A DNA stretch of 30,389 nucleotides from Paramicrosporidium saccamoebae KSL3 (GCA_002794465.1 MTSL01000124.1:1-30389), one strand, 5' to 3'. Positions 2,567 through 20,869 are shown, counted from the first letter of the stretch. Notes: generated by a model not told the origin, from the letters alone. Numbers and translations: made by a program.

Positions 2567-5500
2567 TTAGGGAACATGCCTGTATGTGTGGTCCATTGCT
2601 CCTTTGACTTGGGAGGAAAGGGAAGTGTCCTCTTTGTTCTCCAGCTCGAGTTCTGATAGCAGATCCAAGCGTAACTGGGACGTAGAGTAGTGACGAGGTA
2701 GGTTCTTGGAAGGTCTCATGGGCTTTTCCATCAGAGTGTTGGGGGAGTCTCTTAGCTGAAAGACGTTTAAAGCAGGCGGAAGTGACATGAATTCACCGTT
2801 ACTCTGGGGTATTCCAATTAATTTGTCGATCGATTCCCCAGCCGTACTGCTGCTTATATGGTCTCCCGTTTGAATAGTCGGCTGTGAGCTTTGCATAACA
2901 GAAATGATGGCAACAATACACAGCGATTTGTTGAATAAGGAGCCATAGATCATCTCGGCAATCTTATCGGGCGTGTTTGTTGTCTTTAATCGAAGAGTTC
3001 CCGATGCTAATTGCGATATTCGGTTGAGCGGCCCAATGATGGCAAGATCACCATCCTGTACATTTGGCGTTTGTATAGTCGCCTCAAACGAACGAGCAAT
3101 AAACTTGAACACATCTCCGTCAGGGCGGAGAAGGATCGCTCCTAATGGGGGCCTGCCATAGGATGCCAACAACAGCCGATTATTGGTAAGGAGGGTCACA
3201 ATGAGACCATCCGACCCCAGCACATACTTTTTACAAAACTCTTCAATACCCATAGTGGCTTCACTAAGAGCATTTGTCCCCCATGTAAAGATACTCTCTC
3301 GCGTGGGACTATTGGCGTGGTAGCCATTCGAAACTAGGATTCTGTCCTGAGTTACTTGATACCCCATGGCAGCGTTACTGCCGGTCATGTGAAATGGATA
3401 CTTTTCAAGTTTCACCGCTCCCTTGTAGTAACGGTGAGAAAAGACAGTCGGTGACTGTGTGTCCTGAATACTGCTCTGGGAACCATTGCAGTGAATGCTG
3501 CTTTCAAGAAACCAGAAGGCACTTTCCGCAGACTTTGACAGTGGTGCTACACTCGATGGGCTAGGAGGTTGATGAGTGATCAGCCCAGAAGAGTTGGATA
3601 TTTCCTGATGAGTAGTGTATATGCCTGTGAGCACCTTGCTTTCCTCCTGACTGTCGGCCTGGAAGGGACGAACGTTTGTGAGAAATGGAATACTTGATGT
3701 GTGATCGCACTGGAGATTTTTTGGATTGAAAGTAACAAGTGGTTCATCACTCGTACTTTTAACTGTTACACCATGTGCGATTGAAGAATGATTGGGAATC
3801 CTTTTTGATTGTGGAGTGGGAGCAGCTGAAATGGTGGCAACAACGCAAAATGATTTGTTGTCAGCGGTGCCATAGATTTCTTCGGCGATTACATTGAGCG
3901 CGCTTGATGCGGATAGCTGAAGATCTCCCGATTCCAACTGCGATATTTTGTCAAGTGGTCCAATGATGGCAACATCACCATTTTTCACATTCACTACTTT
4001 GACAGCACCTTCAGATGAACGGGCGATGAATTTGAGCAGTTTTCCTTCGGGGCGGAAAAGAGCTGCCCCCAATGGGGGTCTACCATATGAGGCAATCAGT
4101 AATTGATTATCATCTCTTAGTGCCACAGCGAGACCATCAGATTCCTGTGGACATTCCCCTTTACATAATTTTTCAATTTCCAGAGTTGTTCTTCCAAGAT
4201 ACTTTGCTTGCCACTTTTTGAATGACATAGTCATGGAATTCGATTTCCCATAGCCGCCCAGTAATAATATTCTGTTACTAGTTACTCGGTAGCCCATGGA
4301 GCCGTTTCTGCCGTATATTTGAGAGGAAGATGCATCAAAACCCACCACACCGTAGTAGTAGCGTTTATCAAAGACGGCCGATGACTGTGAATTTCGAGTA
4401 CTTTCTTGAAAGCGTGTATAGTGCTTATGTAGGTGGCGAAACCAGATGGCACGTTCCGCTGGCTCTGTAGGTGATTTTGTACTCGATGGGGCGGGCGATT
4501 GACGGGGAACTGGTCCAGAAGATTTTGCCATTTCTTGATGAGCAGTGTCGGCACGTAGATGATGCTTGCTTTTCTCTTGACCATCGGCTTGGGAGGAGGA
4601 TTGCAGTCGTTCAAAAAACAAGTCATTTGGCAAAAGGTCGGTCTGGGCATTTTCTGATACTGACCCAGAAGGTGATGGGCCAATTGTGTCTTTTAACTTT
4701 TTGCCACGTGACCTTGGAGAGGAACGGGGCTTGGCTTTGGTCTTCTTTGACTGTGGAATCTGTTTAGTTGAAATGGTGGCAACAATACAAAATGATTTGT
4801 TGGCTTCAGGGCTATATATTGTACTGGCAATTTCCCCAAGGGTGCTTGACGCGGATAATTGAAGATTGCCTGATTTCAACTGCGGTATTACCTCAAGTGG
4901 TCCGATTATGGCAATGTCGCCATCCTGTACATCTATCGCTTTGACAGTACCATCGGAAGAACAATCAATAAACTTTAACCATTCTCTGTCAGGCCGAAGG
5001 AGGACTACTCCCAATGGAGGTTTACCATATAATGCTACCAGCAACTGATCATCACTTCCTAATGCCACAGCGAGACCATTGGACTCTAACGGATAATTTT
5101 CGCAAAATTCCTCCATGTTCAGTATAACTTTACTAAGATCGGGCTCCATCCAGTTTCTGCCACACTTCCGCCTATTGGGATTTTTAGCTCTGTAGCCATC
5201 CAACAATAAAATTCTGTCTTGAGCTATCCGGTAACCCATGACGCTATTTCTACCATCAATGCTAATGCGACGTTCCAGAGGTTTTACTGCTCCCTGATAG
5301 TAGCGATGAGAAAAAACAGCCGATGACTGTTTATCTCGAATACTGGCTTGAGAAAAAGCATAAGGATCACATGCGCTGCTAAACCAGATGGCACGTTCCG
5401 CTGAATTTGTAGGTGGTGTTTCGTTTGATAGTCTAGGCAACTGAAGGGAAACTGTTCCAGAAGATTTTTCCTTCTCTCTATGAGTGGCTTCTGTGCTTGG

Positions 5501-6775
5501 GCGTTTGTTTTTTTCTTGACTCTCAGTTTGGGAGGAGGACTGCAGTCGTCCAAAAAACAAATCATTCGATACAGAGTCGGGCTGGGGAGTCTCTGATTGT
5601 GGGCTGGTAGGCGGTAGATTAACCGCCCTTTCCGCTGTTCTACCATTTGGGACTGGGAAACAATGGAGCTTGGCATTGGTCTCTTTTGGCTGTAGAGTTT
5701 GATTCTTCAAAATGGTGGCGACAATACAGAATGATTTGACGGTTTCAAGATTATAAATTGTACAAGCAATTACATTGAGCGCGCTCGAGGCGGATAGTTG
5801 AAGAGCTCCCGATTCCAACTTTGATATTATGCCGAGTGGTCCAATGATGACAACATCGTCATCCTGTACATTTACTGCTTCAACGGTATCGTCAGATGAA
5901 TGTGTAATCAGTTGTAATATATCCCCCTTAGGGCGGAGGAGGATTGCTCCCAGTGGAGGCACACCATACGATGCAATCAGCAACTGATTGTTAGCATTAA
6001 GAGCCACAACGAGACCATCGTGCATCAGTGGATACTCCATTCCACGAAATTTGTCCATCTCCAAAGTGACTTTACTCAGAGTGTTCGTTGCCCATGTACT
6101 GAAGAGATTCTCTCCCATGGGATTGGTTACACTGTAGCCATCCAGCACGATAATTCTGTCCTGAGTCATTCGATATCCCATGGCGGTGTTGCTGCCGAGC
6201 ATTTGTGAGTAGTATTTCTCGGGCTTTATCACTCCCAGGTAGTGATACTGAGAAAGCATAGTTGATGACTTTGTCTCCCATGTACTGATCTGAGAGTCGG
6301 CAAAAAGCTCGCCATCGTCAGGAAACCAGATGGCCCGTTCCGCTGGCTTTGCAAATGTTGCCTTACTCAACGAGTCGAGCGGCTGATACGGAGCAAATTT
6401 AATGGACAGCGGGTCTGTTATTGTAGGTTCAGCGGATAGAACTGCCCGTGGCTCATTTCCCTCTTGCCATTGCTTTGGAAGGGAGAGACTCGTTTCGTCC
6501 ATGAGCGGTGCAAAACAGTCAGCGGGAGGCTGCTGCTCACAGGCTGGACGTGCGTTATCCTGAAAAGTTGGGTAATTAGACACTGACACATCATGTTCGT
6601 TGACAGCTTCAAGGCAAGAAAATTCGTCTTCAACATATGCATCGTTTATGAGTATACCTTCATAGGGCACGAGGTCATTTAACCAACCGTCCTGCGTTAA
6701 AGTATATTCTGACCAACCGTCTGGCAGTGTAGACTTGATGCTCTTTGCAAACACAAGGAACCAAAGGAGATTCAT
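2567..6775 (-). CDS. Array member F: putative secreted protein with 4 copies of the ~200-aa repeat domain, 1402 aa
   Basis: Uninterrupted ORF 2567-6871. The family leader MNLLWFLVFAKSIKS starts at ATG 6775 (codon 33 of the ORF). Four domains begin at the WF motif near 6325, 5385, 4440 and 3512, each running about 610 nt to the C[I/V]VA[T/I]I motif. Confidence 0.88.
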   Translation of the reverse strand: MNLLWFLVFAKSIKSTLPDGWSEYTLTQDGWLNDLVPYEGILINDAYVEDEFSCLEAVNEHDVSVSNYPTFQDNARPACEQQPPADCFAPLMDETSLSLPKQWQEGNEPRAVLSAEPTITDPLSIKFAPYQPLDSLSKATFAKPAERAIWFPDDGELFADSQISTWETKSSTMLSQYHYLGVIKPEKYYSQMLGSNTAMGYRMTQDRIIVLDGYSVTNPMGENLFSTWATNTLSKVTLEMDKFRGMEYPLMHDGLVVALNANNQLLIASYGVPPLGAILLRPKGDILQLITHSSDDTVEAVNVQDDDVVIIGPLGIISKLESGALQLSASSALNVIACTIYNLETVKSFCIVATILKNQTLQPKETNAKLHCFPVPNGRTAERAVNLPPTSPQSETPQPDSVSNDLFFGRLQSSSQTESQEKNKRPSTEATHREKEKSSGTVSLQLPRLSNETPPTNSAERAIWFSSACDPYAFSQASIRDKQSSAVFSHRYYQGAVKPLERRISIDGRNSVMGYRIAQDRILLLDGYRAKNPNRRKCGRNWMEPDLSKVILNMEEFCENYPLESNGLAVALGSDDQLLVALYGKPPLGVVLLRPDREWLKFIDCSSDGTVKAIDVQDGDIAIIGPLEVIPQLKSGNLQLSASSTLGEIASTIYSPEANKSFCIVATISTKQIPQSKKTKAKPRSSPRSRGKKLKDTIGPSPSGSVSENAQTDLLPNDLFFERLQSSSQADGQEKSKHHLRADTAHQEMAKSSGPVPRQSPAPSSTKSPTEPAERAIWFRHLHKHYTRFQESTRNSQSSAVFDKRYYYGVVGFDASSSQIYGRNGSMGYRVTSNRILLLGGYGKSNSMTMSFKKWQAKYLGRTTLEIEKLCKGECPQESDGLAVALRDDNQLLIASYGRPPLGAALFRPEGKLLKFIARSSEGAVKVVNVKNGDVAIIGPLDKISQLESGDLQLSASSALNVIAEEIYGTADNKSFCVVATISAAPTPQSKRIPNHSSIAHGVTVKSTSDEPLVTFNPKNLQCDHTSSIPFLTNVRPFQADSQEESKVLTGIYTTHQEISNSSGLITHQPPSPSSVAPLSKSAESAFWFLESSIHCNGSQSSIQDTQSPTVFSHRYYKGAVKLEKYPFHMTGSNAAMGYQVTQDRILVSNGYHANSPTRESIFTWGTNALSEATMGIEEFCKKYVLGSDGLIVTLLTNNRLLLASYGRPPLGAILLRPDGDVFKFIARSFEATIQTPNVQDGDLAIIGPLNRISQLASGTLRLKTTNTPDKIAEMIYGSLFNKSLCIVAIISVMQSSQPTIQTGDHISSSTAGESIDKLIGIPQSNGEFMSLPPALNVFQLRDSPNTLMEKPMRPSKNLPRHYSTSQLRLDLLSELELENKEDTSLSSQVKGAMDHTYRHVP

Positions 6776-6865
6776 CGGCGTCCTCTGATAGGGTAGAGCG
6801 GAGTAATAAATTCGCACAACTGAAATTAACTCGACCCTGGCAAGATGTTTTGGAACAGTCAATGA
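6776..6865 (-). promoter_or_regulatory. Conserved ~90-bp upstream element of the array genes (one copy per gene)
   Basis: Consensus TTGACNGTTCCAAAGCA(T/C)CTGG..AGGGTC(G/A)AGT.AATT..A.TT...TACTCC...CAG-N9-ATG. Copies lie upstream of ATGs 6775, 7269, 10591, 13115, 15398 and 20371, with a diverged copy at 2275. Function is inferred. Confidence 0.7.
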
Positions 6866-6969
6866 GGGCATTAAGGGTCCATGATTCGATACGATCGCGA
6901 ACCGGCAGATGAGGATTTTAGCGCTTCTAAATCTGCTATAGGCGGGTTTATCCTATGCCCATAATCGCC

Positions 6970-7269
6970 TTAGGATGGCTTGTTTGGAAAGAGCTCTTTC
7001 ACAGACATGAGTGGTGCTGAATAGCCGCCAGAAAGCGGCTTTGATTTCCTGAACGAGAGCTCTGAACCGTGACGAATTGGGGCAGTAGGTACTGGCCTAA
7101 CGTATTTCTCGATTGGGGCAATGGCAAAAACTCTGTCTTCTAAATCCAGATCATTAAACCGCTGGGAATTTTCGGGCCAGCGCTCCTGCGTTAAAGTATA
7201 CTTCACCCAACTGGCTGGCGATGTAGGCTGTACGCTTCTTGCAAGCAGAATGAGCCAAAAAAACCGCAT
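6970..7269 (-). pseudogene. Array member E: leader-only remnant or small secreted protein, 99 aa
   Basis: MRFFWLILLARSVQPTSPASWVKYTLTQERW matches the family leader and follows the family upstream element (7270-7357). The ORF stops before any repeat domain. Confidence 0.65.
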
Positions 7270-7777
7270 CGATGATCCCTGGTAGGATGGGTTGGAGTAA
7301 TAAATTTTTACACTTGGAATTGACTCGACCCTTTCCAGGTGCTTTGGACCGGTCAATAACTGTCGTGAATGGCACATTTTTCGGTAATATGAGGTTTGAG
7401 TAAAGGGCCCTGTTAAACAGCATCCACTTGCTATTGGTGAGTCCGATCCAGATAGCGGTCCCGCAGCCCAGTTTGGTTATATTAAGAATGGCCGCCTATA
7501 AAGAAGCCATGTACGTTGATATAAAAAAGCTCAGCCATCAACAGCGCCCTTATTGATATCCCTGGCCCGTAGTTATACTATCTCACAGATAAGATCAGGC
7601 CACTCTTCGATTGAATGAATTAAGCGCTCTAAATGTGCTCGCCACGATCATTGTCGCTGCACGGGCTGGTCATAATAACTTTATTGTTTATAATTTATCG
7701 GGCGTGTTTAGATGTTGTCCTTTAACAATGTTTCCTTACTCAATAATAATACGGTCTAACACTTGACGACTTTTGCT

Positions 7778-10591
7778 CTACTGTTGTTTTGGGAAATTTG
7801 TCTGCAAATACGATTCATGATTCCTTTGGCCGTTGACTTGGGAAGAGCTGTCTTTTGCCCTCTCCAACTCGGGCTCAAAGTCAGAATCCGACTCTGATTC
7901 TGATAACAAAACGGTGGTTTCAATGGGGTTAGCGGGCTGGTTTAAAATTTTTTGGACGCTGGACTGAGTCTGAGTCTGGATCTGGGTCTGAGTCTGGAGG
8001 TTAGAATTGATAAAGGGCATTTCATTAGGAGGCGCCATAGGTGTAATCTTCAGAGAATTCTCCCATCCTCTTGGCTGTTTTGCGGCCAAAGCAGGTGATG
8101 GCAGACGGACAGGTGGTAACGAGTATGCTAAAGGGGGAGGCGCCATCAAGTCACTGCTATTCTGAGAGTTGGCTTGTGGGTAGGCCATCTGGTCCGCTCT
8201 GGTTGCCTGTTCCACTGATCCTCCCGGTACACTACAGCTTGTATGGATCCCAGTTTTAATAGTCGGCTGTGAGTTTCGCTTCGCAGAGATGGTGGCAACA
8301 ATACACATTGATCTGTCGATTTCGGAGTCATAGATTTTATCGACAAGTACATCGAGAGTACTTGATGTCTCCAATGAAACAGTCCCCAGTTCCAACTGCG
8401 ATATTCTGTCGAGTGGTGCCACAATAACAACATCACCATTTTTTACATTCGCCGTTCTAGCAGCACCTTCAGATGAACGGGCGATGAATTTGAGCAGATT
8501 TCCTTTGGGGCGGAAAAGAGCTGCTCCCAATGGGGGTCTACCATATGAGGCAATCAGTAATTGATTATCATCTCTTAGTGCCACAGCGAGACCATCCGGT
8601 TCCTGTGGGAATTTCTCTTTACACAAGTTCTCAATCTCCAAAGTTGTTTTACCAAGATACTTTGCTTCCCACTCTTTGATTGACCCACTTGTGCGATTCG
8701 CCCTACCGTGGCCACCCAACAATAGTATTCTGTCATGAATTACTCGGTAACCCATAGAGGCATTTCGACCAGCTATTTGGGTGAGATTTCTATCGACGCC
8801 CACTGCACCGTGGTAGTAGCATTTATCAAAAAAGGCCGATGGCTGTGCACTTTGAGTAGTGTAGGTATAACTGTGGTGTTCACGCACCCGGAGAAACCAG
8901 TTGGCAAGCCCCGCTGAATTTCTAAGTGGTGTTCCACTTGGTGTGGCAGACAATTGGCGGGGAACTGGTTCCGAGGGCTTTTGCATATCTTGATAAACAG
9001 TCTCTGCACGTGTCTGTGGCTGGTCATCCTCTTCACCATCGGCTTCGGAGGAAGAGCGTAATCGCTCGAAAAATGAATCACTTGATACGACGCCATGATA
9101 GGAAGTACTTGGTAGCGGACCTGCGGGCAATGGATCACTTGCACTTTCCGTTTCCGTACCATGTGGAGCTGAAACATACTGAGGACTGACATTGGTATCC
9201 CTTGAGGGTGGAGTAGGACTATTCGAAATGGCAGCAACAGTACAGAGGGATTGGTTGCTGGCAAGGTCATAGATCTCGTTGCCAGTTGCATCTGAGGCTG
9301 GGTGTTTGTTACGTTCGTTCTCCTCTTGGCCATCAGGCTGGAAGGAAGAACCAAAATTGTCAAAGAGCGGAATCATTAGCTCAATCTCAGGTTGAGCCTT
9401 TTCTGATTCTAGACTGGAAGATGGTGGATTATCCGCACTTTCAACTACTTCATCCCGTGGAATTGGGAGGAAATGGGCCTTGGTTCTGGTTCCTTCTAAT
9501 TGTATGATTTGATTGTTCGAAATTGCAGCAACAATACAAATTGATTTCCCACTTGCAAAGCCGTAGAGTCTACTAGCAATTTCTTCAGAGGTGCTTGATA
9601 CGGATAGTTGAAGATTTCCCGATTTTAACTGTGATATCATGTTGAGTGGTCCCACAGCAACAATGTCACCTTCCTGCACAACTGCTGCTTCGACGGTATC
9701 GTCAGATGAATGTGTAATTAATTGTAATAAATCTCCATTAGGGCGGAGGAGAATTGCTCCCAGTGGAGGTCTACCATATGATGCCATCAGCAACTGATTG
9801 TTGGCATTAAGAGCCACAACAAGCCCATCGTGCATCAGTGGATACTCCATTCCACGAAATTTGTCCATCTCCAAAGTGACTTTACTCAGAGTGTTCGTTG
9901 CCCATGTACTGAAGAGATTCTCTCCCATGGGATTGGTTACACTGTAGCCATCCAGCACGATAATTCTGTCCTGAGTCATTCGGCATCCCATGGCGGCGTT
10001 GCTGCCGAGCATTTGTGAGTAGTATTTCTCGGGCTTTATCACTCCCAGATAGTGATACTGAGAAAGCATAGTTGATGACTTTGTCTCCCATGTACTAATC
10101 TGAGAGTCGGTAAAAAGCTCGCCATCGTCAGGAAACCAGCTGGCACGTTCCGTCGGCTTTGCAACTGTTGCTCCACTCGATGAGTTGGGTGGCTTATACG
10201 GGACAAATACGATGGACAGCGGATCTGTTATTGTAGGTTCAGTGGTTAGAACTGCCTGTGGTTCATTTCCCTCTTGCCATTGTCCTGGAACAGAGCGATT
10301 ATTTTCATCAACGAACAGTGCTGAGTGGTAAGCAGGGGACGGCCGCTGTTCACAGGCTGGAAGTGTGTCTTTCTCAAAAGTTGAATAGTTAGACACTGGC
10401 CCTTTGCGTTCTTTAATAGCTTCTAGGTAGGTAAATCCGTCTTGTTCTACACTTGCATCGCTCACAAATGCACCTCCATATGACGCGAGGTCTTTGGGCC
10501 AACTGCCTTCCTCTAAAGCATGTTCCACCCAGTTCTCTGGCTGTGTGGACTGGATGCTCCCTGCAAACACGAGGAGCCAAAAGAAATTCAT
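7778..10591 (-). CDS. Array member D: putative secreted protein with 2 repeat domains, 937 aa
   Basis: Leader MNFFWLLVFAGSIQS; domains start near 10135 and 8895; S/P/Q-rich tail including QTQTQIQTQTQS. Confidence 0.9.
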   Translation of the reverse strand: MNFFWLLVFAGSIQSTQPENWVEHALEEGSWPKDLASYGGAFVSDASVEQDGFTYLEAIKERKGPVSNYSTFEKDTLPACEQRPSPAYHSALFVDENNRSVPGQWQEGNEPQAVLTTEPTITDPLSIVFVPYKPPNSSSGATVAKPTERASWFPDDGELFTDSQISTWETKSSTMLSQYHYLGVIKPEKYYSQMLGSNAAMGCRMTQDRIIVLDGYSVTNPMGENLFSTWATNTLSKVTLEMDKFRGMEYPLMHDGLVVALNANNQLLMASYGRPPLGAILLRPNGDLLQLITHSSDDTVEAAVVQEGDIVAVGPLNMISQLKSGNLQLSVSSTSEEIASRLYGFASGKSICIVAAISNNQIIQLEGTRTKAHFLPIPRDEVVESADNPPSSSLESEKAQPEIELMIPLFDNFGSSFQPDGQEENERNKHPASDATGNEIYDLASNQSLCTVAAISNSPTPPSRDTNVSPQYVSAPHGTETESASDPLPAGPLPSTSYHGVVSSDSFFERLRSSSEADGEEDDQPQTRAETVYQDMQKPSEPVPRQLSATPSGTPLRNSAGLANWFLRVREHHSYTYTTQSAQPSAFFDKCYYHGAVGVDRNLTQIAGRNASMGYRVIHDRILLLGGHGRANRTSGSIKEWEAKYLGKTTLEIENLCKEKFPQEPDGLAVALRDDNQLLIASYGRPPLGAALFRPKGNLLKFIARSSEGAARTANVKNGDVVIVAPLDRISQLELGTVSLETSSTLDVLVDKIYDSEIDRSMCIVATISAKRNSQPTIKTGIHTSCSVPGGSVEQATRADQMAYPQANSQNSSDLMAPPPLAYSLPPVRLPSPALAAKQPRGWENSLKITPMAPPNEMPFINSNLQTQTQIQTQTQSSVQKILNQPANPIETTVLLSESESDSDFEPELERAKDSSSQVNGQRNHESYLQTNFPKQQ

Positions 10592-10853
10592 CGGCGACCC
10601 CTGAAAGAGCGGGGGGGGGGTAACAGATTTGCCTAATTGAAATTAACTTGACCCTGGCCAGGTGCTTCGGAGCAGTCAATAATTGTCTTTAGTGGTGCAT
10701 TTTCGATAAGATCGGGCTACTCTTTGATTGAATGAATTAAGCGCTCTAAATGCACTCATTAATATTGGAGACAATCTCTGCTGCCATCTTTAGGACAAGT
10801 GTCGTAAATAAGCTTCTTGGTTTCTCAGGTCGTTGACTTGGGAAGAGGAAAAA

Positions 10854-13115
10854 CTACTGTTTCTCCGATTCTGAGCCAGAATCGGACTCTAACTCTGGCA
10901 ACACCTCCAAGCGCGACTGAGCCTTGTAGTACTGATGAGGTGTGTTCCGGCAAGGTCTCAGGAACTTGCCCATCAGAGTGGTTGGAGGTCCTATTTGTAG
11001 TGCGGTAGGTTTAGTAGGAGGCGGTACACGAACAGAAGGCACCGGGTTTGTTATAGGCGGAAGCGTCACTTGGGGTACCCGGATTACCTGCCCAGCTAAT
11101 CCACCAGGTGAGTTGCTACTTGAACTAACCATAACTTTAGTAGTCGTCTGCAGGCCTGGGCTGACGGAGATGGTGGCGACAATACAAAGTGAGTTGTTGT
11201 TTACAGAGCCATAGATTTTCTTGGCAAGTTCCTCAGGGGAGCTTGATGCGGATAGTTGAAGGAATCCCAGCTCCAGTTGCGATATTATGTCGAGTGGTCC
11301 GATGATGACAATATCATCGTTTTGTACACTCACCACTTTGACAGTGTCGTCAGATTGACGGTCAATAAACTTTAACCAATCTCCTTTAGGGCGAAGGAGA
11401 ATTGCTCCCAGTGGAGGTTTGCCGTAAGATGCTACCAGCAATTGGCCATTAGTCTTAAGAGCCACAACGAGGCCATTAGACGACTGCGGATACTCTTTAA
11501 GGAATTCTCCAATCTCTAGTGTGGCCTCGCTAATATTACTCGTCGCCAATTCCTTGCCGAGTTCTTGACCCACGAGACCCTTTTTGTAGTAGCAATCCAA
11601 CAGTAAAATTTTGTCCTGAGTTATTCGGTAATTCATGAAGCTGCTATTGCCTGACATGTGAAAGCGATATTCCAGGAGCTTCACCATTCCGTAATAGCAA
11701 CGGTGAGAAAAAACAGTTGATGACTGTGTAGACCGAAGATTGGTTTGAGAGAAATTGTAGTGGTTGCGCCCTTTGGAGAACCACTTGACACGGCCAGCTG
11801 ACTTTGCAGATATATTTGATGAGTCAGATTTCGACTTTGCCTTTTTCCGACGACTAGTACATAGTTGCGTTTGCCGCTCGCCTTTCTTTCGGCTGTTGGC
11901 TTGGGGAGAGGACGACGCACTTGATTCGCAATCGGAATGGGCATCTTTTGATTGTGGACTAGAGGAAGATAGACGATTCACACTTTCGACTGCTCCACTG
12001 TGTAGGCCTGGAAGAGAGTAGGGCTTGACATTGGCTGAAAGGGTGGCGACGATACAAAGTGATCTGCCTGTTTCAGGGTTATGGATTACTCTGGAAATCT
12101 CATCGGGCACGCTTGACGTGGGTAGCTTAAGATCTCCCGATCCCAATTTTAATATTTTTTTGAGCGGTCCCACAATAACAAAGTCGCCATCCTGTACATC
12201 CACTGATTTGACACTATCATCAGATGTACGAGAAATAACTTTCAGCCACGTCCCGTCAGGACGGAGAAGAATTGCACCCAATGGAGGAGTACCATGGGAC
12301 GCCATCAGTAACTGGTTATTAGCATTAAGAGCCACAACGAGACCATGAGTCAACCCCGGGTACCTTTTACGCAATTCTTCAATTTCCAAAGCGGCTTCAC
12401 CAAGATCACATGTCGCCCACTCTTGCTTGCGCTGTTTGCCCAAACCGCCTTTAGCATTGTAAACATCCAATAGTAAAATTCTGTCCTCGGTTACTCGGTA
12501 GCCCATGTAACTGTTCCTCCCCCGCATGTGGAGGGGTAATACTTGAGGCTTTACCACCCCCCGGTAGAAGCGTTCAGAAAAGACAATTGGTGACTGTGTA
12601 GCCTCAATATTGGTTTGAGAGCAACTATAGCGGCCGTAAATGGTACGAAACCAGATGACACGTTCCATCGACAAGTCGAATAGATGATAGGGGGCAACTT
12701 TGATGAGTGGCGCATCTCTAATCCCGTGTTTTGGGGGTAAAGACGTCTCTGACTCTTCAATTTGTAATTCTGTCTCGACAAATGAAGACACAATTGTTTT
12801 TGAGTTTTTCCTGCGTGGAAGCATCCCGTACACATTGTCGTCATGGCATAGTCGGCTTGAAAAGAGGTGGTCATTCTTGTATATGGACAACATGGAACAA
12901 TCACTAGGAAGCAGCTGCTCTCCCTCAGATAGAGACTTGCTATCATGAAAAGATGCGGCAGTAAACATTAACTCGCTACATCCTCTGGAGAGGGCAAAAT
13001 CAAACATTGTGACCTCAGGGAATAGTTCTTCAAGCGGCTGGGTATACTCCGGCCTACCGCTCGGTAGTGTAGACTGTATGCCTCTTGCAAGAACAATGAC
13101 CCAAAAAAAATTCAT
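10854..13115 (-). CDS. Array member C: putative secreted protein with 2 repeat domains, 753 aa
   Basis: Leader MNFFWVIVLARGIQS; domains start near 12650 and 11780; basic linker SRRKKAKSK; acidic end ESDSGSESEKQ. Confidence 0.9.
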   Translation of the reverse strand: MNFFWVIVLARGIQSTLPSGRPEYTQPLEELFPEVTMFDFALSRGCSELMFTAASFHDSKSLSEGEQLLPSDCSMLSIYKNDHLFSSRLCHDDNVYGMLPRRKNSKTIVSSFVETELQIEESETSLPPKHGIRDAPLIKVAPYHLFDLSMERVIWFRTIYGRYSCSQTNIEATQSPIVFSERFYRGVVKPQVLPLHMRGRNSYMGYRVTEDRILLLDVYNAKGGLGKQRKQEWATCDLGEAALEIEELRKRYPGLTHGLVVALNANNQLLMASHGTPPLGAILLRPDGTWLKVISRTSDDSVKSVDVQDGDFVIVGPLKKILKLGSGDLKLPTSSVPDEISRVIHNPETGRSLCIVATLSANVKPYSLPGLHSGAVESVNRLSSSSPQSKDAHSDCESSASSSPQANSRKKGERQTQLCTSRRKKAKSKSDSSNISAKSAGRVKWFSKGRNHYNFSQTNLRSTQSSTVFSHRCYYGMVKLLEYRFHMSGNSSFMNYRITQDKILLLDCYYKKGLVGQELGKELATSNISEATLEIGEFLKEYPQSSNGLVVALKTNGQLLVASYGKPPLGAILLRPKGDWLKFIDRQSDDTVKVVSVQNDDIVIIGPLDIISQLELGFLQLSASSSPEELAKKIYGSVNNNSLCIVATISVSPGLQTTTKVMVSSSSNSPGGLAGQVIRVPQVTLPPITNPVPSVRVPPPTKPTALQIGPPTTLMGKFLRPCRNTPHQYYKAQSRLEVLPELESDSGSESEKQ

Positions 13116-13583
13116 CGGCCTGCCTTGGTAGAATGAGCCGGAGTAGTAAATTGTCCAATTGAAATTGACCCAACCCTAGCCAGATGCTTTGGAACGGTCA
13201 GTAAATGAATCCAATGGCGCATTTTTCGACAAGATTGGACTACTTTTTATTGGGTAGCCGATAACGTCATAAATAACCACCCGGCTCAAGTCATAGTGCT
13301 TTTATTATCTATTGGTTGGAGGGTAAGACTGTCTTTTACAAAATGCAACTTGATACTCGGTATTGAAATCTGCTGCCGTATTCAGGACAAGTGTCGTGAA
13401 TATAATCTACGGTTTATTTGGCCATTGGATTGAGAAGAAGAAAAACTCTACTGGTTCTCCGATTCGGACTCAGAGTCGGATCTAGTAGGTGGGGTGGCAA
13501 TTGGTGTGTCAAAAATGCAAGTGGCACTAATTCGCTGTTATTTTGGGAATCGATCTGTGGACGGGCCATTTGGGGTGGTTCCA

Positions 13584-15398
13584 TTAATATTTCAGCTGGC
13601 CCCCAGCCTCAATAGTCGACAGCGGAGCTCGTCTAACGGAAATGGTGGCGACGATACAGAGCGATTTGTTGGCTGAAGAATCAAAAATTTCTCTGGCAAG
13701 TTTATTTGGTGGGCTGGATGCGGAAAGTTGAAGATTTTCCGATTCCAACTGCGATATTCTGTCGAGTGGCCCTACGATAGCAATATCACCATTTTGCGCG
13801 TTCACTTCTTTGACAGTATCATCAGATGAACCGCCAATAAACCTCAATCGCCCCCCGTTAGGGCGGAGAAGGACTGCTCTCAATGGGGGCCTGCCATATG
13901 ATGCCATCAATAATTGATTGTTATTCCGTAACGCCACAACGAGACCATCAGATACCAGTGAATGCCCCTCTCCAAAGAAATTCCCAAACTGCAGAGTATT
14001 TTCATTAAGATCATCCGTTGCCCATGTGCCAAAGAGACTCTCTCCCGCAGGGTTATTCGCACTATAGCCATCGAACAATAATATCCTGTCATGGGTTACT
14101 CGGTATCCCATAGAGCCGTTTCTGCCGAACATGTAGAAGAGAAGGCTCTCGGGTTTCACTATTCCGTGGTAGGAGCACTGAGAAAAAACAGTTGATGATT
14201 GTGCATTCATAATGTTGGTTCGGAAGTCAATAAAAGGCTTTCCATTTTCGAGAAACCAGCTAGCACGTTCCGCTGAATTTATAGGGGAGGGAACACTTGC
14301 ATTTTCAACCGTCTCACCACAGGGGACTGAATAGGAATTGAGTATGACGGCGGCCTCTTTTGATTGTGGAATATGATTCGTTGAAATGGTGGCGACAATA
14401 CACATTGATCTGTCGGCTCCAGGACTATAAATTGCATTGGCAATTACATCGAGTGCGCTTGATGCGGGTAGTTGAAGAGCTCCCGATTTCAACTGCGATA
14501 GTCTATCAAGCGGTGCCACAACAACGGTATCGCCGTGCTGTACATTCAGCATTTGGACAGTACTGTCAGACGATTGCGCGATAAACTTTAACATATCGCT
14601 ATCCAAGCGGAGGAGAGCTACTCCCAGTGGGGGCCTGCCATAGGATGCTATCAGTAATTGATTATTATCCCTTAGTGCCACAGCGAGACCATCAGATCCC
14701 GGTGAACATTTCTTTTTACATAATTTTTCAATCTTCAAAGTTGTCTTGCCAAGATACTTTGTTTCCCACCCTTTCAATGACCCATTCGTGCAATTCTTTC
14801 TACCGTAGCCACCTAGCAATATTATTTTGTCACGAGTTATTCGGTAACCCATGGAGACGTTTCGCCCAAACATTTGGATAGGGGATTCCACGAGATGCAC
14901 CATACCGTAGTAGTAGCGTTTATCAAAGAAAATCGATAACTTTGCATGTCGAGCACTGGTTTGAAGGGAACTGTAATGCGTGATCGCCCTGAGAAACCAG
15001 GCGGCGCGGCTCGCTGACTCTACTAGTGCTGTCTCACTCGATGATTCAGGCAGTTGAGGCGGGGCAGATGTGGCGGATAGCGGGTCTGTCGTCCCAGTTT
15101 CTGTGGGTAGAGCTGTCCGTGGCTCAGCCTCCTGTTGCCACTGCCTTGGAAGGGTGGGATCATTGAGGAACGACTCTTGTCTCCATAATAAAAGTCCGTC
15201 TTTCATAAAGGCTGAGTCATTAGACTTTGGCTCGCCATGTGCTTTGGCAACTTTAAGGAAAGAAACTACATCCTCAGTATCTTCATAAGGCATGAAATTC
15301 TCTAACCAACTGTCCTGCGCTAAAGCATGTTCTGCCCAACTATCTGGTGTTGTGGACTGGATGCTCCCTGCAAACACAATGGCCCAAAGGAAATTCAT
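13584..15398 (-). CDS. Array member B: putative secreted protein with 2 repeat domains, 604 aa, tail cut short by a frameshift
   Basis: Leader MNFLWAIVFAGSIQS; domains start near 14995 and 14255. Sequence homologous to the paralogue tails continues in other frames past the stop, to about 13448. Confidence 0.88.
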   Translation of the reverse strand: MNFLWAIVFAGSIQSTTPDSWAEHALAQDSWLENFMPYEDTEDVVSFLKVAKAHGEPKSNDSAFMKDGLLLWRQESFLNDPTLPRQWQQEAEPRTALPTETGTTDPLSATSAPPQLPESSSETALVESASRAAWFLRAITHYSSLQTSARHAKLSIFFDKRYYYGMVHLVESPIQMFGRNVSMGYRITRDKIILLGGYGRKNCTNGSLKGWETKYLGKTTLKIEKLCKKKCSPGSDGLAVALRDNNQLLIASYGRPPLGVALLRLDSDMLKFIAQSSDSTVQMLNVQHGDTVVVAPLDRLSQLKSGALQLPASSALDVIANAIYSPGADRSMCIVATISTNHIPQSKEAAVILNSYSVPCGETVENASVPSPINSAERASWFLENGKPFIDFRTNIMNAQSSTVFSQCSYHGIVKPESLLFYMFGRNGSMGYRVTHDRILLFDGYSANNPAGESLFGTWATDDLNENTLQFGNFFGEGHSLVSDGLVVALRNNNQLLMASYGRPPLRAVLLRPNGGRLRFIGGSSDDTVKEVNAQNGDIAIVGPLDRISQLESENLQLSASSPPNKLAREIFDSSANKSLCIVATISVRRAPLSTIEAGGQLKY

Positions 15399-15797
15399 CG
15401 ATGACCCGTGGCGGGTTGGAGCGGAGTAATAAGATTTTGCAATTTAAATTGGCCCGACCCTACCCAGATGCTTTGGAACGATTAGTAGATTTATTTAATA
15501 ATAGTACCACTAAGCCTGGCATGTCCAGTTATAATTGAGAGGTTATAAAGACCCTTTATTGGTATCTCTGGCCCGTAGTTATACCATCTCACAACAATCA
15601 TGACATATCAAAGGCATCTAGAGAGTTCAGGAGGCCAAGGCTGTCGCCCCAGTGAACTTGCGTGTTGAGGAAGCCCCTTTATTAATGATCGGGTCTAGTA
15701 AAAAATTAAAAGTCGACCTACGGACGAATCATTTGGGGCACTCCGATTGTCTATCCCGTTTATCTATCAAGTGTTTTCGGTTGTAAAGATCTCAGGT

Positions 15798-16429
15798 TCA
15801 ATTTTCAGCCGCAAGCTTTGATGACAAAATTTTGGCAGCAATACAGATTGATTTGTCGTTTTTAGGGTCATAGATTTTTTTGGAAATTCGTTCAGGCGCG
15901 CTTGGTGCAGATAGTTGAAGATTTCCCGATTCCAACTGCAATATTTTGTCAAGTGGTCCGATTATGGCAATATCACCATCTCGTGCCTTCACCGCTTTGA
16001 TCAACTGAACGGGAAATAAACTTCAGCCACTAGATATTAATGGAAACTCTTTCTTACAGAATTCTTCAATCTCTAATGCGGCTTCACTCAGTGCATGCTG
16101 TAGTTGCGATTCTTGGAACTATTCGCGCCGTACCCATGCAACAGTAGGATTCTATCCTGAGTTACCCGGTAACCCATGGGGCGGTAGTTGCTGCCCAACA
16201 TGTGAAAGGGATACTTCCGGGGCTTTACCACCTCTTGGTAAGAGCGACGAGAATAATGATTGCATTTGCTCTAAAACCAGCAGCCATGCTCCGCTGACTT
16301 TGTCCCGTTTGGCGAGGCGGGAGACTGACGGGGAACTGGTCCAGAGGCTTTCGATTTGGCCTTCTTTCGACGGGCAGTATTTGTGCGTCTGCGCGACTGT
16401 TTCTTTTTACCGGCTTGAGAGGATGCATG
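15798..16429 (-). pseudogene. Decayed fifth repeat domain of array member A
   Basis: Linker and domain homology continues past the TGA at 16430 (...KSAEHGCWF*SKCNHY...MGYRVTQDRILLLHGY...ALSEAALEIEEFCKK...DGDIAIIGPLDKILQLESG...KSICIAAKI). It has stops at 16271, 16088 and 16023, a frameshift near 16090, and internal deletions including the whole LVVAL...YG.PPLG segment. Confidence 0.85.
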
Positions 16430-17233
16430 TCAGCTTTCAGAAGACGAAGCACTTGATGCGAGATAGGTCTGATAATTCTCTGAATCTGAACCAGGGAATG
16501 ATGGGCCAATTGCAATTTTTAACTTTTTCCCACGTGAGCCTGGCTGGGGGCTGGGCTTGGCTTTGGCCTTTTTGGAGCGGGGAATCTGATTAGTCGAAAT
16601 GGTAGCGACAATACAGATTGATTTGCCCGTTTCAGGGCTATGGATTACTCTGGAAATCTCATCGGGCGCGCTTGATGTGGGTAGCTTAAGCTCTCCCGAT
16701 CCCAATTTTAATATTTTTTTGAGCGGTCCCACAATGACGACGTCGCCATCCTGTACATCCACCGCTTTGACAGTATTGGCAGACGACTGTGCGATTATTT
16801 TCAACGAAAATCTTTCAGGACGGAGAAGAACCGCCCCCAATGGAGGCTGACCGTATGATGCTATCAGCAATTGATTATAAGCGCCAAGAGCCACAATGAG
16901 GCCATCGGATATCAGTGGAATGGTTCTTCTACAGAGCCTTTCGATCTTCAAAGTATCTTCATTGAGAGCATTTGTTGCCCATGTGTCAAGGAGATTCTCT
17001 CCCGTGGAATCGCTTGAATTGTAGCCATCCAACACTAGAATTCTGTCCTGAGATATTCGGTATCCCATGGCAGAGTTGTTGCCAAACATGTGAAAGTTAT
17101 TTTTGCCAACCTTTACCACTCCCTTGTAGCAACGGCAAGAAAAGACGGTCAATGGCTTACCTTGAATCTGGGTTCTAGTGAGCCTAGAAAGCTTGCCGCT
17201 ATCAGGAAACCAGATGTGCCGTTTTGCTGGCAT
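16430..17233 (-). CDS. Fourth repeat domain of array member A, cut off by an in-frame TAG (267-aa ORF, no leader)
   Basis: Same frame as ORF 17240-20371 and only 6 nt after its TAG. It encodes one complete domain (WFPDSG...ILVLDGY...YGQPPLGAVLLRP...KSICIVATIS). Whether it is expressed is unknown. Confidence 0.55.
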   Translation of the reverse strand: MPAKRHIWFPDSGKLSRLTRTQIQGKPLTVFSCRCYKGVVKVGKNNFHMFGNNSAMGYRISQDRILVLDGYNSSDSTGENLLDTWATNALNEDTLKIERLCRRTIPLISDGLIVALGAYNQLLIASYGQPPLGAVLLRPERFSLKIIAQSSANTVKAVDVQDGDVVIVGPLKKILKLGSGELKLPTSSAPDEISRVIHSPETGKSICIVATISTNQIPRSKKAKAKPSPQPGSRGKKLKIAIGPSFPGSDSENYQTYLASSASSSES

Positions 17234-17239
17234 TTCTGG

Positions 17240-20200
17240 CTATTTCTTGTTCGATGGGCTGGGAGGCCGATGGGTGGCTAGTCCAGAGGCTTTTGCTGCT
17301 TTTCGAAGAGTGTATGCACGTGTGCGTGGCCTACTTTGATCTTGACCGCTCGCTTGAGAGGAGGCCCTTAGACCTTCAAAAGATGAATCATTTGACACGA
17401 GGACGGGCTGGACATTTTTTTGTTGCGGACTAATGGGCGATGGATTACCCACCCTTTCTACTGTTTTACCATTTGGGGCCGGAGAGTGACGAGGACTGTC
17501 ATTGGTCTCTCTTGATTGTGGGGTAGGATTGTTCGAAATGACAGCAACAATGCAAAGTGATTTGCTGAGTGTGGAGCCATAGACTTTCTCGGCAATTTCA
17601 CCAGGCGTGTCTGATGTCTTCAATTGAAGAGTTCCCAACTCTAATTTTGATATACTGTTGAGCGGCCCAATGATGGCAAAGTCACCATTTTGCACATTCT
17701 CCACGTCGACAGTATTATCCGAAGAACGAGCGTTAAACTTTAGTCGCTCTCCATCAGGGCGGAGGAGGATCGCCCCCAATGGAGGCTTACCATAGGATAT
17801 CATCAACAGCTGGTTATTAGCGCGTAGGGCCACAATGAGACCATCTGTTCCCAACGTATACTTTCTGCAAAACTCTTGAATTTCCATAGTGGCTTCACTC
17901 AAAGCATTAGTACCCCATGTGAGAATATTCTCTCTCGCAGGGCTATTAGCACGGTAGCCATCCGACACTAGGATTCTGTCCTGAGCTACTTGGTATCCCA
18001 TGGCAGAGTCACTGCCTGCCATGTGAAATGGATGTTTCTCAAGTCCCACCACTCCCTTGTAGAAACGGTGGCCAAAGACAGTTGATGATGTTGTGTCCTG
18101 AATACTGGTTTGAAAATTTTTGTGGCAACTTCTGCCTTCAAGAAACCAGAGGGCACGCTCAGCTACACTCGGTGGGCTAGAAGGTTGGTGAGTGACTAGC
18201 CTAGAAGAGTTGGACATTTCCTGATGAGGGGTGGCCGCGCTTGTGTACGGATTAGCTCTCTCTCGACTGTTGTCTTGTAAGAAGGGTTGAGAAGTTTCAA
18301 AAGGCGAATCAATCGGCGTGTGATTGGGCAGAGCCCTTGCAGATGGTCTATTACCCGGCAATCGTCTACGGCGACGTTTCATTAGTGTATATTGTGGGAC
18401 TGGAGAGTAATCGGACTTGATGCCGAGCTTTTTTAGATGTAGGCTCTGATTAATCGAAATGGAGGCGATGATACAAAATGATTTGTCGGTTTCGGGGTTG
18501 TGGAGTGCAGTGGCAACTTCATCAAACGTATCTGATAACTTGAATTTAAGAGCCCCCGATTCCAGTTGCAATATCTTGTCACGTGGTCCTACAACGACAA
18601 AGTCACCGTGCTTCACATTCCCTACGTTGATAATGTCGTCGCCAGTGGTACCACTAACAAGCTTAAACGTACGTCCGACAAGGCGGAAAAGAGCCGCAGC
18701 CAATGGGGGCTTGCCATACGATGCCATCACCAACTGATTATTAGGACGAAGAATTACGATGAGACCATCTGACCCCACCACATAATTTTTGCAGAGCTCT
18801 TTCACATCCATAGTGGCTTCCCTCAAAGCATTCGCTCCCCACATAAAGAGACTTTCTCGCGCGGGGCTATTAGCATGGTAGCCATTCGACACTAGGATTC
18901 TGTCCTGAGTTACTTGATATCCCATGATAGTGTTACTGCCTGTCATGTAAAATAAACGTCTATCATTTTCCACCGCTCCCTCGTAGAGGCGGTAGCCAAA
19001 GACAGTTAATGATGTTGTGTCCTGCGTACCTATGTGATGATCTTTGTAGTGATTGCTGCCTTCAAGAAACCAAAGGGCACGTTCAGCTGACTTTGTCGGT
19101 GATGGTACACTCGATGGTCTAAAAGGTTGATGAGTGACTAGTCCAGAAGATTTTTCTAGCTCTCGAACAGTCTCTTTTGCTTGCGGAATTTGCTTGGTTA
19201 GAATGGTGGCGACAATGTAAAGCGATTTGTCGCTTATAACGCCATGAACTGATTTGGCCATTTCCTCAGGGGTGCTTGTTGCGTATAGCTGACAGAATCC
19301 CCGTTTCAATGGCAATATTAAGTCAAGTGGTCCTACAATGACAATGTCACCAGTTTGCACACTTTTCGTCTTGATAGTGTCATCAGAAGAACGAACAATA
19401 AACGTGAGCATCCGTCCATTAGGGCGGAGAAGAGCCGCACCTAGCGGGGGTTTGCCATAAGATACAATCACTAATTGACCTCTTGCATTAAAAGTCACAA
19501 CAAGACCGTCAGATATTAGGGGATAACCGGCTCTACGGAATGGCTCGCTCTTCAGGGCAGCTTCGTTAAGATTATCTGCCGCCCATGCGCTGAATAGACT
19601 CTCTCCTGCAGGATTATTTGCCTTGTAACCATCCAGCAATAGAATCCTGTCGCGGGTGGCTCGATATCCCATAGCGGCGTTGCTGCCGAACATGTAGGAG
19701 AGAAGGTTCCCGGGTTTTATCGCTCCGTAGTAGGAAATTTGAGAAAAAACAGCTGATGACTGTGTACCCATGGTATTTGCTTGAAAGTCAACAAAAGGTT
19801 TACCATCTTCAAGAAACCAGTTGACACGTTCCTCTGGACCTGGAGGCAATGTTCCGCTCGATGAGGCAGGTGGCTGATATGGGACAGATGTGTTGGACGG
19901 TGGGTTTGTCATCCTAGTTGCTGCAGGTGGACACACCCATGGTTCAGCCTCTTGTTGCTGCTGTATCGAAGGAAAGAGATGCCTTTCATCCCTGGGCGGT
20001 TCTACATCAGCGAGCAGTGGCTGTTCCCATGGTGAAAGCGTGTCCTTTTGCAAAGTTGAATGGTTAGGCACTGGTTCTTTACGCTCCCTGGCGCCTTCTA
20101 GTTCTTTATGCTCCCTGGCGCCTTCTAGTTCTTTATGCTCCCTGACGCCTTCTGGTTCTTTACGCTCCCTGGTGCCTTCTGGTTCTTTACGCTCCCTGAC

Positions 20201-20371
20201 GCCTTCAAGGAAGGAAAACTCACCTTCAGCATATGCTTCATCTGCAAATATATCTTCATATGGCTCGAGGCCTTTTGACCAATTGTCCTGCGCAAAAAAA
20301 TCGTCTAGAAAACTTTCTGGTAGCGCAGACTGGATGCTCCCTGCAAATACGAGGAACCAAAGGAAAATCAT
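17240..20371 (-). CDS. Array member A: putative secreted protein with 3 repeat domains and a 9-aa tandem repeat, 1043 aa
   Basis: Leader MIFLWFLVFAGSIQS; domains start near 19815, 19070 and 18145; KRRRRR in the second linker. Confidence 0.88.
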   Translation of the reverse strand: MIFLWFLVFAGSIQSALPESFLDDFFAQDNWSKGLEPYEDIFADEAYAEGEFSFLEGVRERKEPEGTRERKEPEGVREHKELEGAREHKELEGARERKEPVPNHSTLQKDTLSPWEQPLLADVEPPRDERHLFPSIQQQQEAEPWVCPPAATRMTNPPSNTSVPYQPPASSSGTLPPGPEERVNWFLEDGKPFVDFQANTMGTQSSAVFSQISYYGAIKPGNLLSYMFGSNAAMGYRATRDRILLLDGYKANNPAGESLFSAWAADNLNEAALKSEPFRRAGYPLISDGLVVTFNARGQLVIVSYGKPPLGAALLRPNGRMLTFIVRSSDDTIKTKSVQTGDIVIVGPLDLILPLKRGFCQLYATSTPEEMAKSVHGVISDKSLYIVATILTKQIPQAKETVRELEKSSGLVTHQPFRPSSVPSPTKSAERALWFLEGSNHYKDHHIGTQDTTSLTVFGYRLYEGAVENDRRLFYMTGSNTIMGYQVTQDRILVSNGYHANSPARESLFMWGANALREATMDVKELCKNYVVGSDGLIVILRPNNQLVMASYGKPPLAAALFRLVGRTFKLVSGTTGDDIINVGNVKHGDFVVVGPRDKILQLESGALKFKLSDTFDEVATALHNPETDKSFCIIASISINQSLHLKKLGIKSDYSPVPQYTLMKRRRRRLPGNRPSARALPNHTPIDSPFETSQPFLQDNSRERANPYTSAATPHQEMSNSSRLVTHQPSSPPSVAERALWFLEGRSCHKNFQTSIQDTTSSTVFGHRFYKGVVGLEKHPFHMAGSDSAMGYQVAQDRILVSDGYRANSPARENILTWGTNALSEATMEIQEFCRKYTLGTDGLIVALRANNQLLMISYGKPPLGAILLRPDGERLKFNARSSDNTVDVENVQNGDFAIIGPLNSISKLELGTLQLKTSDTPGEIAEKVYGSTLSKSLCIVAVISNNPTPQSRETNDSPRHSPAPNGKTVERVGNPSPISPQQKNVQPVLVSNDSSFEGLRASSQASGQDQSRPRTRAYTLRKAAKASGLATHRPPSPSNKK
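20073..20207 (-). repeat. 5 x 27-bp coding minisatellite (EG[V/T/A]RE[R/H]KE[P/L])
   Basis: Plus-strand units (g/a)gttcttta(c/t)gctccctg(g/a)(c/t)gccttct start at 20073, 20100, 20127, 20154 and 20181, with no spacers. Confidence 0.97.
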
Positions 20372-20869
20372 TGATGGCCCCTGGTTGAATATTGGGATAC
20401 TAGCATTATAATTTGAGTTGACTCGACACCAACCAGGTATTTTGAAAAGATCCAGGAATATAGTGTTTGGTTCAGTAATACTGGACTAATTTTTGCTTGG
20501 ATGCGTCGCTACGGACTTTGTAAGACGGCTAGAGGGCTCTTATCGTGACTTTGTGAGCCCTCTTATAGGTTCAATACTAGCGTGGCAGTATTTATATAGA
20601 GTTAGCGACAATATTCCCACTACACGCCTTTATCTTTCTCTTTAATAACGGGTTAATTCTGAGTATTTAACCTGCTGATCTGCCCATTACATTACAGGAT
20701 GGATTTAATACTTTATAAATAGTCACCAAATTGACCTTGTTGCTGCAGACGGGTTGCTCAATTTTGAGTCGTAGTACACTACTAATTATCTATGCTGTTG
20801 CCAGCTTTAGTAAAAACCCTGGCGGCCCCTTATGTGCTAACGTTTACAATTTGAATAATCTTTCTTCAC

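Follow-up and report, generated by a model that had tools for sequence, protein, structure and literature searches.

Canonical PPM catalysis relies on aspartates that hold two metals. The metal ligands lie in motifs 1, 2, 8, and 11, which in PPM1A correspond to D38, D60/G61, D239, and D282. In the PPM fold, two central antiparallel beta-sheets pack as a sandwich flanked by helices. PP2C-type members typically carry a flap subdomain that is reduced in RsbX/SpoIIE-type members. The same fold, with an incomplete metal site, is found in TAB1 and the C-terminal domain of RssB, which use it for binding and not for hydrolysis. Phosphatase-fold proteins are also secreted by parasites. Toxoplasma secretes PP2C-family proteins, PPM3C and related (PMC7793252; PMC12379425), and a pseudophosphatase-like protein, GRA44 (PMC7031617). 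In Microsporidia, lineage-specific families with signal peptides include ricin-B-lectin-like proteins (PMC9224602) and the large gene families of Nematocida (PMC10393165). Here, we describe an array of paralogous genes, arranged head to tail, in a 30,389-nucleotide stretch of DNA (the window; GCA_002794465.1 MTSL01000124.1:1-30389) from Paramicrosporidium saccamoebae KSL3. This organism is a Rozellomycota parasite that grows within the nucleus of Saccamoeba (PMC5701793). We favor the reading, with a probability of roughly 0.7, that the array encodes a pseudo-PPM family of secreted multivalent binders or scaffolds at the host-nuclear interface.

The defining element of the array is a domain of about 215 amino acids (aa). 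Using a single seed copy against six-frame, stop-to-stop pieces (phmmer), 14 complete copies are found within 2891-19834, all on the minus strand, with expectation (E) values from 3e-44 to 4e-142. Three partial copies lie at 16267-16094, 16013-15816, and about 2271-2059 (phmmer, and a rerun with a broader profile). Aligned over 215 columns, the complete copies match the first at 38-54% of residues and have 22 invariant positions, including G50..M55-G56-Y57, I64..D68-G69-Y70, G109-L110-V112, L120..G126-x-P128-P129-L130..L134-R136, D162..P168, and S203..A208. In a broader alignment of 35 domains (13 window copies and 22 domains of relatives), D162 of a 'GD' turn is the sole invariant residue, and G37, G109, G126, and R136 are nearly invariant. 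Conservation is strongest in the segments DGY, SYG[KR]PPLG, LLRP, GD..IVGPL, and KS.CIVA. According to the structural model and the residue map described below, these best-conserved segments are located at the strand ends that form the edge of the PPM active site. The median pairwise ratio of nonsynonymous to synonymous substitution rates (dN/dS) across the domain is 0.42 (91 pairs), which suggests moderate purifying selection, as expected of a fast-evolving coding family.

The fold was predicted with AlphaFold2 for the copy at 4760-5401. With the 14 window copies as the alignment, the model reached a predicted local distance difference test score (pLDDT) of 70 and a predicted template-modeling score (pTM) of 0.76. 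With the 35-sequence alignment, these values rose to 89.3 and 0.88, and all five models scored 87-89. In Foldseek searches of the PDB, the top 26 matches of the first model and the top 20 of the second all have the PPM fold. They include tPphA, S. agalactiae STP, RsbX, PstP, PPM1K, PppA, PBCP, Lem3, RssB, and SpoIIE, with E values from 8e-4 to a few e-2 and probabilities up to 1.0. The top 20 of the second model have E values of about 1e-3 and template-modeling (TM) scores of 0.38-0.44. Unrelated folds rank after the PPM matches, with worse E values and TM scores of about 0.1-0.2.

Strands are predicted at residues 28-37, 47-51, 56-60, and 63-67, followed by a short helix (96-102) and further strands at 109-114, 119-125, 130-138, 141-147, 153-157, and 163-168. 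The C-terminal part consists of helices 169-177 and 188-196 and strand 204-212. We take this order of strands and helices to match that of PPM structures such as PstP, tPphA, and PP2Calpha. In the prediction, ten core strands in PPM order form a beta-sandwich accompanied by two C-terminal helices. Residual motifs occupy matching structural positions, with DG after strand 3, G after strand 5, LLR.DG in strand 6, and GD before strand 9. The flap is absent from the model, in which about five residues (148-152) link the flanking strands; profile alignment with PPMs (hhalign) leaves a gap of about 40 residues there. The model also has one additional N-terminal hairpin relative to PPMs. The domain is thus best described as a predicted, stripped-down PPM fold, an assignment we consider highly likely, although short of certain because the TM scores are below 0.5 and a helix layer is missing.

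A sequence-only reading of the window had described repeat domains at 2904-19820, listed their motifs, mapped these one by one onto PPM motifs, and proposed a PPM/PP2C fold of the PTC7/SpoIIE-like type. The repeat array is confirmed far beyond chance, its span agrees with that given, and the listed motifs are all among the invariant positions of the 14 copies. The check proposed in that reading, a Foldseek search with a predicted structure of one copy, was made on the very copy it suggested, and the outcome supports the proposed fold. The motif map is reproduced by strand order and by a collinear hhalign alignment. The Foldseek results do not point specifically to PTC7 or SpoIIE, and SpoIIE ranks low.

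The predicted metal site is incomplete. At the motif-2 position, the 14 complete copies have D in nine, G in three, and N in two, and a decayed copy has H ('RILLLHGY'). The Asp is present in 8 of 13 window copies and 21 of 22 outside domains of the broader alignment, and the Gly that follows it in 11 and 19 of these, respectively. The motif-8 Asp is absent from all 35 domains; its position is Pro or Leu in the window and variable elsewhere. The motif-11 Asp is likewise absent from all 35, replaced by Lys or Arg (12/13 in the window, 12/22 outside) and followed by Ser. The position of the PPM 'GDS' loop reads 'G-[KRN]-P-P'. No conserved acidic pair that could serve as motif 1 is found at any candidate position in the 35 domains. 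As only the motif-2 Asp-Gly is kept among four acidic ligands, a binuclear Mn/Mg center could not form, and the domain would not be a canonical phosphatase. From the residue map, we infer that the canonical PPM active site is absent across the whole family, not from this array alone, and that the domain is catalytically dead. The two hallmarks of a pseudophosphatase, a PPM fold and an incomplete metal site, are therefore both found, the former in the predicted structure and the latter in the residue census.

The sequence-only reading had anticipated this loss of catalytic aspartates, and its count at motif 2 (Asp in 9 of 15 copies, otherwise G, N, or H) is exact. It regarded the motif-2 Asp as the only survivor. 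This survival is not random, as nearly all domains outside the window retain the Asp and its loss is confined to two clades of copies within the array. In the tree of copies, the G-type copies group as a clade of their own, and the N-type copies fall within another, each with support of 100/99. Because each type clades together, the motif-2 Asp was apparently lost only a few times, and the losing subtypes then spread among genes.

The gene heads suggest that these proteins leave the parasite cytoplasm. Every head begins with M-x-F/L-F/L-W; next come a hydrophobic stretch and a small-residue motif of the SIQS/GIQS type. Kyte-Doolittle hydrophobicity is 1.5-1.7 over residues 3-14 in all six. Many relatives, including distant ones, also start with hydrophobic N-termini. 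These N-termini look like signal peptides, and the family proteins are probably secreted. After the signal-like N-terminus, about 130-180 aa of acidic sequence lead to one to four copies of the globular domain. The linkers between domains span 35-200 aa and are rich in Ser, Pro, Gln, and Lys; they are of low complexity, with Ser, Pro, Thr, Gln, Gly, and Asn making up about 50%. The C-terminal tails are acidic and lack a hydrophobic anchor.

Basic clusters of the types KRRRRR, RRKK, and KKTKAKPRSSPRSRGKKLK occur in the linkers of g1 (aa 665), g3 (aa 422), and g6 (genes are named as in Table 1). They could be nuclear-localization-like or nucleic-acid-binding patches and are noteworthy given the parasite's intranuclear life. 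The N-terminal region of g1 also contains a 27-base-pair (bp) tandem repeat (20074-20206; 4.9 copies, 92% matches) that encodes about five units of 'EG.RE[RH]KE[PL]'. The other paralogues lack this repeat.

Several observations weigh against assigning the family to the PPMs or against considering it inactive. Pfam PP2C, PP2C_2, and SpoIIE do not match the whole open reading frames (ORFs; E<=1) or the 35 single domains (E<=10). Similarly, profile searches of all PDB sequences with the window-copy and 35-domain alignments (hmmsearch) return no PPM match. In a local hhalign comparison, the family profile scores 21.2 against 80 PrpC/Stp-type PPM genes gathered from bacterial genomes (P=0.03, probability 1.7%), which is not significant alone. 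By sequence methods, the link between the domain and PPMs is not significant. Structurally, the Foldseek TM scores of the PPM matches are 0.38-0.46, below 0.5, and the reported root-mean-square deviations (rmsd) are large. In place of the long alpha1/alpha2 pair, the model has one short helix and a loop that is partly disordered. The residue map was built from hhalign and secondary-structure order and not from superposition, and the position of motif 1 is ambiguous. Two acidic residues also deserve mention. D62 is conserved in 12 of 13 window copies. D170 ('GPLD'), a single residue away from the motif-8 Asp position, is present in 7 of 13 and is not conserved outside the window. D62 ('TQD') is an unlikely motif-1 Asp: the model places it in a beta-hairpin turn, distal to the motif-2 loop, and relatives have D, N, E, or S at this position.

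The hhalign alignment is collinear with the PPM motifs. It pairs RILLLDGY with L.vVADGMGG, dGLvVaL with GTTlvaa, qLLiaSyG.PP with ..iahIGDSR, GDiVvVGP with gD.lLLCSDG, and slCIVa with DNITvv. The score exceeds those of all 30 block-shuffled controls (maximum 20.9) and of both reversed controls (12-13). No alignment was obtained in global mode. B. subtilis PrpC served as bait for collecting the PPM genes; its PPM identity was confirmed by PDB matches, and the comparison itself used the 80 genome-derived sequences. E. coli PphC was dropped as a PPM yardstick after phmmer returned no PDB relative. The sole PPM-related lead in Pfam is a sub-threshold match (E=0.25) between the central strands of one domain and SidD_cat, a PPM-fold family.

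A Kelch-like match, the only one from the PDB profile searches, was also considered. It involves a 25-residue hairpin, '...GYRVTQDRILLLDGY', aligned with '...G..V.QGRIYVLGGYD' (per-stretch E about 3 for 8pks and 200-370 for 8pjw). This candidate was rejected because the model is not a propeller, and the likeness is probably a chance beta-hairpin match. Domain residues 47-72 (e.g., window 5186-5263), 'HM.GRNSAMGYRVTQDRILLLDGY', resemble the Kelch consensus '.M..RRS..G..V.QGRIYVLGGYD'.

The non-significant sequence tests, low TM scores with large rmsd, and largely missing alpha1/alpha2 layer of the four-layer sandwich would all be expected if the PPM likeness did not reflect ancestry, either through convergence on a beta-sandwich or because the AlphaFold2 model is wrong. 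However, two models built from different alignments yield the same exclusive list of PPM matches, and the five models of the deeper run agree with each other. The residual motifs at matching structural positions and an hhalign score above every shuffle also speak for kinship, making convergence or model error rather improbable. If the fold is accepted, the domain might still be an enzyme whose catalytic set is reduced or different. One metal might, for instance, be bound by the motif-2 Asp-Gly with help from N52, D162, or D170, and the substrate may be other than protein. The near-constant Asp (21/22) and Gly (19/22) of motif 2 outside the window, the invariance of D162 (35/35), and the presence of D170 in 7 of 13 window copies are compatible with this idea. 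Moreover, other chemistries exist within the PPM fold, such as that of the phosphocholine hydrolase Lem3, one of the Foldseek matches. Nevertheless, three window subtypes without the motif-2 Asp remain conserved and open, D170 is not maintained outside the window, and Lys or Arg replaces the motif-11 Asp. In addition, we take D162 to be the structural 'GD' turn of PPMs and not a metal ligand. Residual catalysis is therefore very unlikely.

A different function for the same fold would be a structural one, as a component of the spore wall, polar filament, or surface coat instead of a host-directed binder. Spore-wall and polar-tube proteins of Microsporidia are lineage-specific, secreted, and repeat-rich. 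The family resembles them in its signal-peptide-like starts, repeated modules, long Ser/Pro-rich linkers, lineage restriction, and tandem arrays. Strong conservation of the former active-site edge would be needless for a pure structural filler, and the C-terminus lacks a hydrophobic anchor; neither point is decisive, and we regard a structural role as unlikely. For the favored pseudo-PPM reading, the former catalytic edge is probably kept as a ligand-binding surface, as suggested by conservation, because the active-site-edge segments are the best conserved and the copies appear to be under purifying selection. At the nuclear interface between parasite and host, the secreted proteins would then act as multivalent binders or scaffolds, and the ligand could be a phosphorylated host protein. 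A bolder version, which we offer as speculation and consider doubtful, is a phosphatase fold turned into a secreted multivalent 'reader'. One to four dead PP2C domains, released into the host nucleus, would clamp phosphorylated host proteins or occupy the substrates or partners of PP2C. If so, host signaling or chromatin would be rewired, and the tandem array would provide diversified specificities.

The array extends over 1546-20371 of the minus strand and comprises six ORFs and three decayed pieces (Table 1). The flanking ORFs are ordinary eukaryotic genes, encoding ING/PHD, GINS Psf3, MCM8-like helicase, RhoGAP-SH3, CBF/Mak21, and SUN-domain proteins, and the array genes are those of the eukaryote P. 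saccamoebae. About 100 bp directly 5' of the start codon are conserved at all six gene heads (consensus ...TTCCAAAGCACCTGGCTAGGGTCGAGTCAATTTCAATTG...). This stretch is probably a shared, duplicated promoter or 5' untranslated region, and the array units look like separate transcription units that were duplicated with their promoters. In some copies, the stretch can also be read as an in-frame peptide, 'PKHLARVELIS...'. A single giant gene with introns was rejected, as a conserved upstream stretch and a signal-peptide-like start recur at every unit. The g1b ORF lacks its own signal peptide and is parted from g1 by a lone stop codon at 17240-17242. Here, g1 and g1b are counted as separate pieces, and the stop is not read through. 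Together with the frame-shifted fifth copy (15816-16430), g1b represents either the decaying 3' part of a once longer gene or an assembly or sequencing error. Between its two complete domains, g4 retains the C-terminal stub of a third at 9218-9310.

Table 1. Coordinates of the array genes, domain copies, decayed pieces, and conserved upstream stretches in the window.
Feature	Coordinates	Strand	Description
g1	17240..20371	-	1043-aa ORF; signal-peptide-like start MIFLWFLVFAGSIQS; acidic N-region
g1 domains (n=3)	19193-19834, 18449-19087, 17528-18163	-	Profile scan
g1b	16430..17233	-	267-aa ORF in the same frame as g1; one complete domain, 16589-17227
Decayed domain copy	15816..16267	-	Two frames, 16094-16267 and 15816-16013; His at motif-2 position
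g2	13584..15398	-	604-aa ORF; start MNFLWAIVFAGSIQS; domains 14376-15014, 13632-14273; overlaps PSACC_01737
g3	10854..13115	-	753-aa ORF; start MNFFWVIVLARGIQS; domains 12030-12668, 11160-11798
g4	7778..10591	-	937-aa ORF; start MNFFWLLVFAGSIQS; complete domains 9512-10153, 8279-8914
g5 fragment	6970..7269	-	Gene head only, ~100 aa; signal-peptide-like start MRFFWLILLARSVQP; upstream region conserved; no domain
g6	2567..6775	-	1402 aa from MNLLWFLVFAKSIKS; frame open upstream to ATG at 6871
g6 domains (n=4)	5702-6343, 4763-5401 (modeled copy), 3821-4459, 2894-3529	-	Profile scan
Relic at array end	1546..2271	-	Last third of domain (~2062-2271) and family-type C-terminal tail; no gene head
Conserved upstream stretch, ~100 bp	20372..20470, 15399-15500, 13116-13215, 10592-10690, 7270-7370, 6776-6875	-	In front of the six gene heads

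When an array ORF is used as a protein-search query, two deposited proteins from the same 30,389-bp contig are found, PSACC_01737 and PSACC_01738; the window thus spans an entire P. saccamoebae contig. The deposited gene models for the locus are probably wrong, because the genomic ORFs run uninterrupted through the SYG[KR]PPLG segment and this excised segment is kept in all 14 copies and in relatives. The 'introns' of the two models (346 and 692 aa, at 13584-15398 and 17240-20371) excise the best-conserved core of the domain, e.g., SYG[KR]PPLG. Several further family members deposited for P. saccamoebae likewise match only over the first ~100 positions of the domain.

Searched exhaustively with HMMER, a set of 1.84 billion representative proteins yields 55 relatives. 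The ten that were looked up, and the three named by word-indexed protein searches, all come from P. saccamoebae or from JGI/Logan metagenome contigs. All of these are 'hypothetical proteins', among them PSACC_00012, _00209, and _00220/_00704 of P. saccamoebae. A word-indexed protein search with the 35-domain profile returned nothing new, and scans of metagenome contigs with the family alignments returned no loci. On a 37-kilobase metagenome contig (L082), seven or more genes with the domain lie on one strand, adjoining a histone deacetylase gene. At a second P. saccamoebae locus (L083), a histone deacetylase gene is likewise close to five divergent genes with one domain each. The regions in question are L082:1-19656 and L083:3700-13900. 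The shared neighbor may reflect conserved synteny and may mark an old home locus from which the multi-domain array of the window derived. Among the relatives traced, the family is lineage-restricted and tandem-expanded, with pseudogene debris. It is not mentioned in the genome paper (PMC5701793) or in the other literature searched and has neither a Pfam model nor a name.

Elsewhere on the contig, the RhoGAP-SH3 gene contains a 36-bp tandem repeat (3.6 copies, 25549-25677) downstream of its SH3 domain. The contig ends carry short 12-bp tandem repeats at 1-25 (TTAATGATGTAT, two copies) and 30333-30387 (AAGTACCATCTA, 4.6 copies), which are not mutual reverse complements.

Among known systems, the best structural matches to the window domain are bacterial-type PPMs (tPphA, Stp1/STP, PstP, and PrpC) and the minimal RsbX, whose size (199 aa) is close to that of the window domain. 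The window domain shares with bacterial PPMs the order of the core strands, the C-terminal helices, the DG after the motif-2 strand, the Gly at 'GDS', 'LLR.DG', and the 'GD' turn. Unlike these phosphatases, it lacks significant sequence similarity, the motif-8 and motif-11 Asp, the motif-1 acidic pair, and the flap. Its alpha1/alpha2 pair is cut to one short helix, and it is repeated one to four times per putatively secreted polypeptide. TAB1 (2irm) and RssB (3f79/3eq2), which also appear among the Foldseek matches, are single-domain, cytosolic regulators whose PP2C kinship is still visible in sequence. In contrast, the window family is probably extracytoplasmic, judging from its N-termini, is tandem-repeated and organized in gene arrays, and is not recognized as PP2C kin by sequence searches.

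With Toxoplasma, the likeness lies in an intracellular eukaryotic parasite that exports, here putatively, phosphatase-fold proteins to the host interface. The Toxoplasma proteins belong to a different phylum, are unrelated in sequence, and have one domain each. Catalytic motifs are present in PPM3C and related proteins, and GRA44 is an acid-phosphatase-type protein. The microsporidian families resemble the window array in genomic style: both form tandem arrays, diverge rapidly, and leave pseudogene debris, and the signal peptides of the former have look-alikes at the N-termini here. They differ in the kind of domain. Pseudo-PPMs (TAB1 and RssB) and secreted parasite PP2Cs (Toxoplasma) are thus already known. 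No PPM-derived family of the window type was found in the literature searched, and we know of no prior description of tandem gene arrays that encode minimal pseudo-PPM domains, repeated in tandem and exported. The family described here is a new, unannotated, and putatively secreted pseudo-PPM family, whose domain most likely serves for binding and not for catalysis. It takes up about 60% of the contig and has at least two further loci. With a PPM fold assigned, what had been a block of 'hypothetical proteins' becomes the basis of a testable hypothesis on the way in which a parasite living in amoeba nuclei handles its host. To the catalogue of pseudoenzymes that already holds TAB1 and RssB, it adds the unusual case of minimal, tandem-repeated, and putatively exported PP2C-derived domains.

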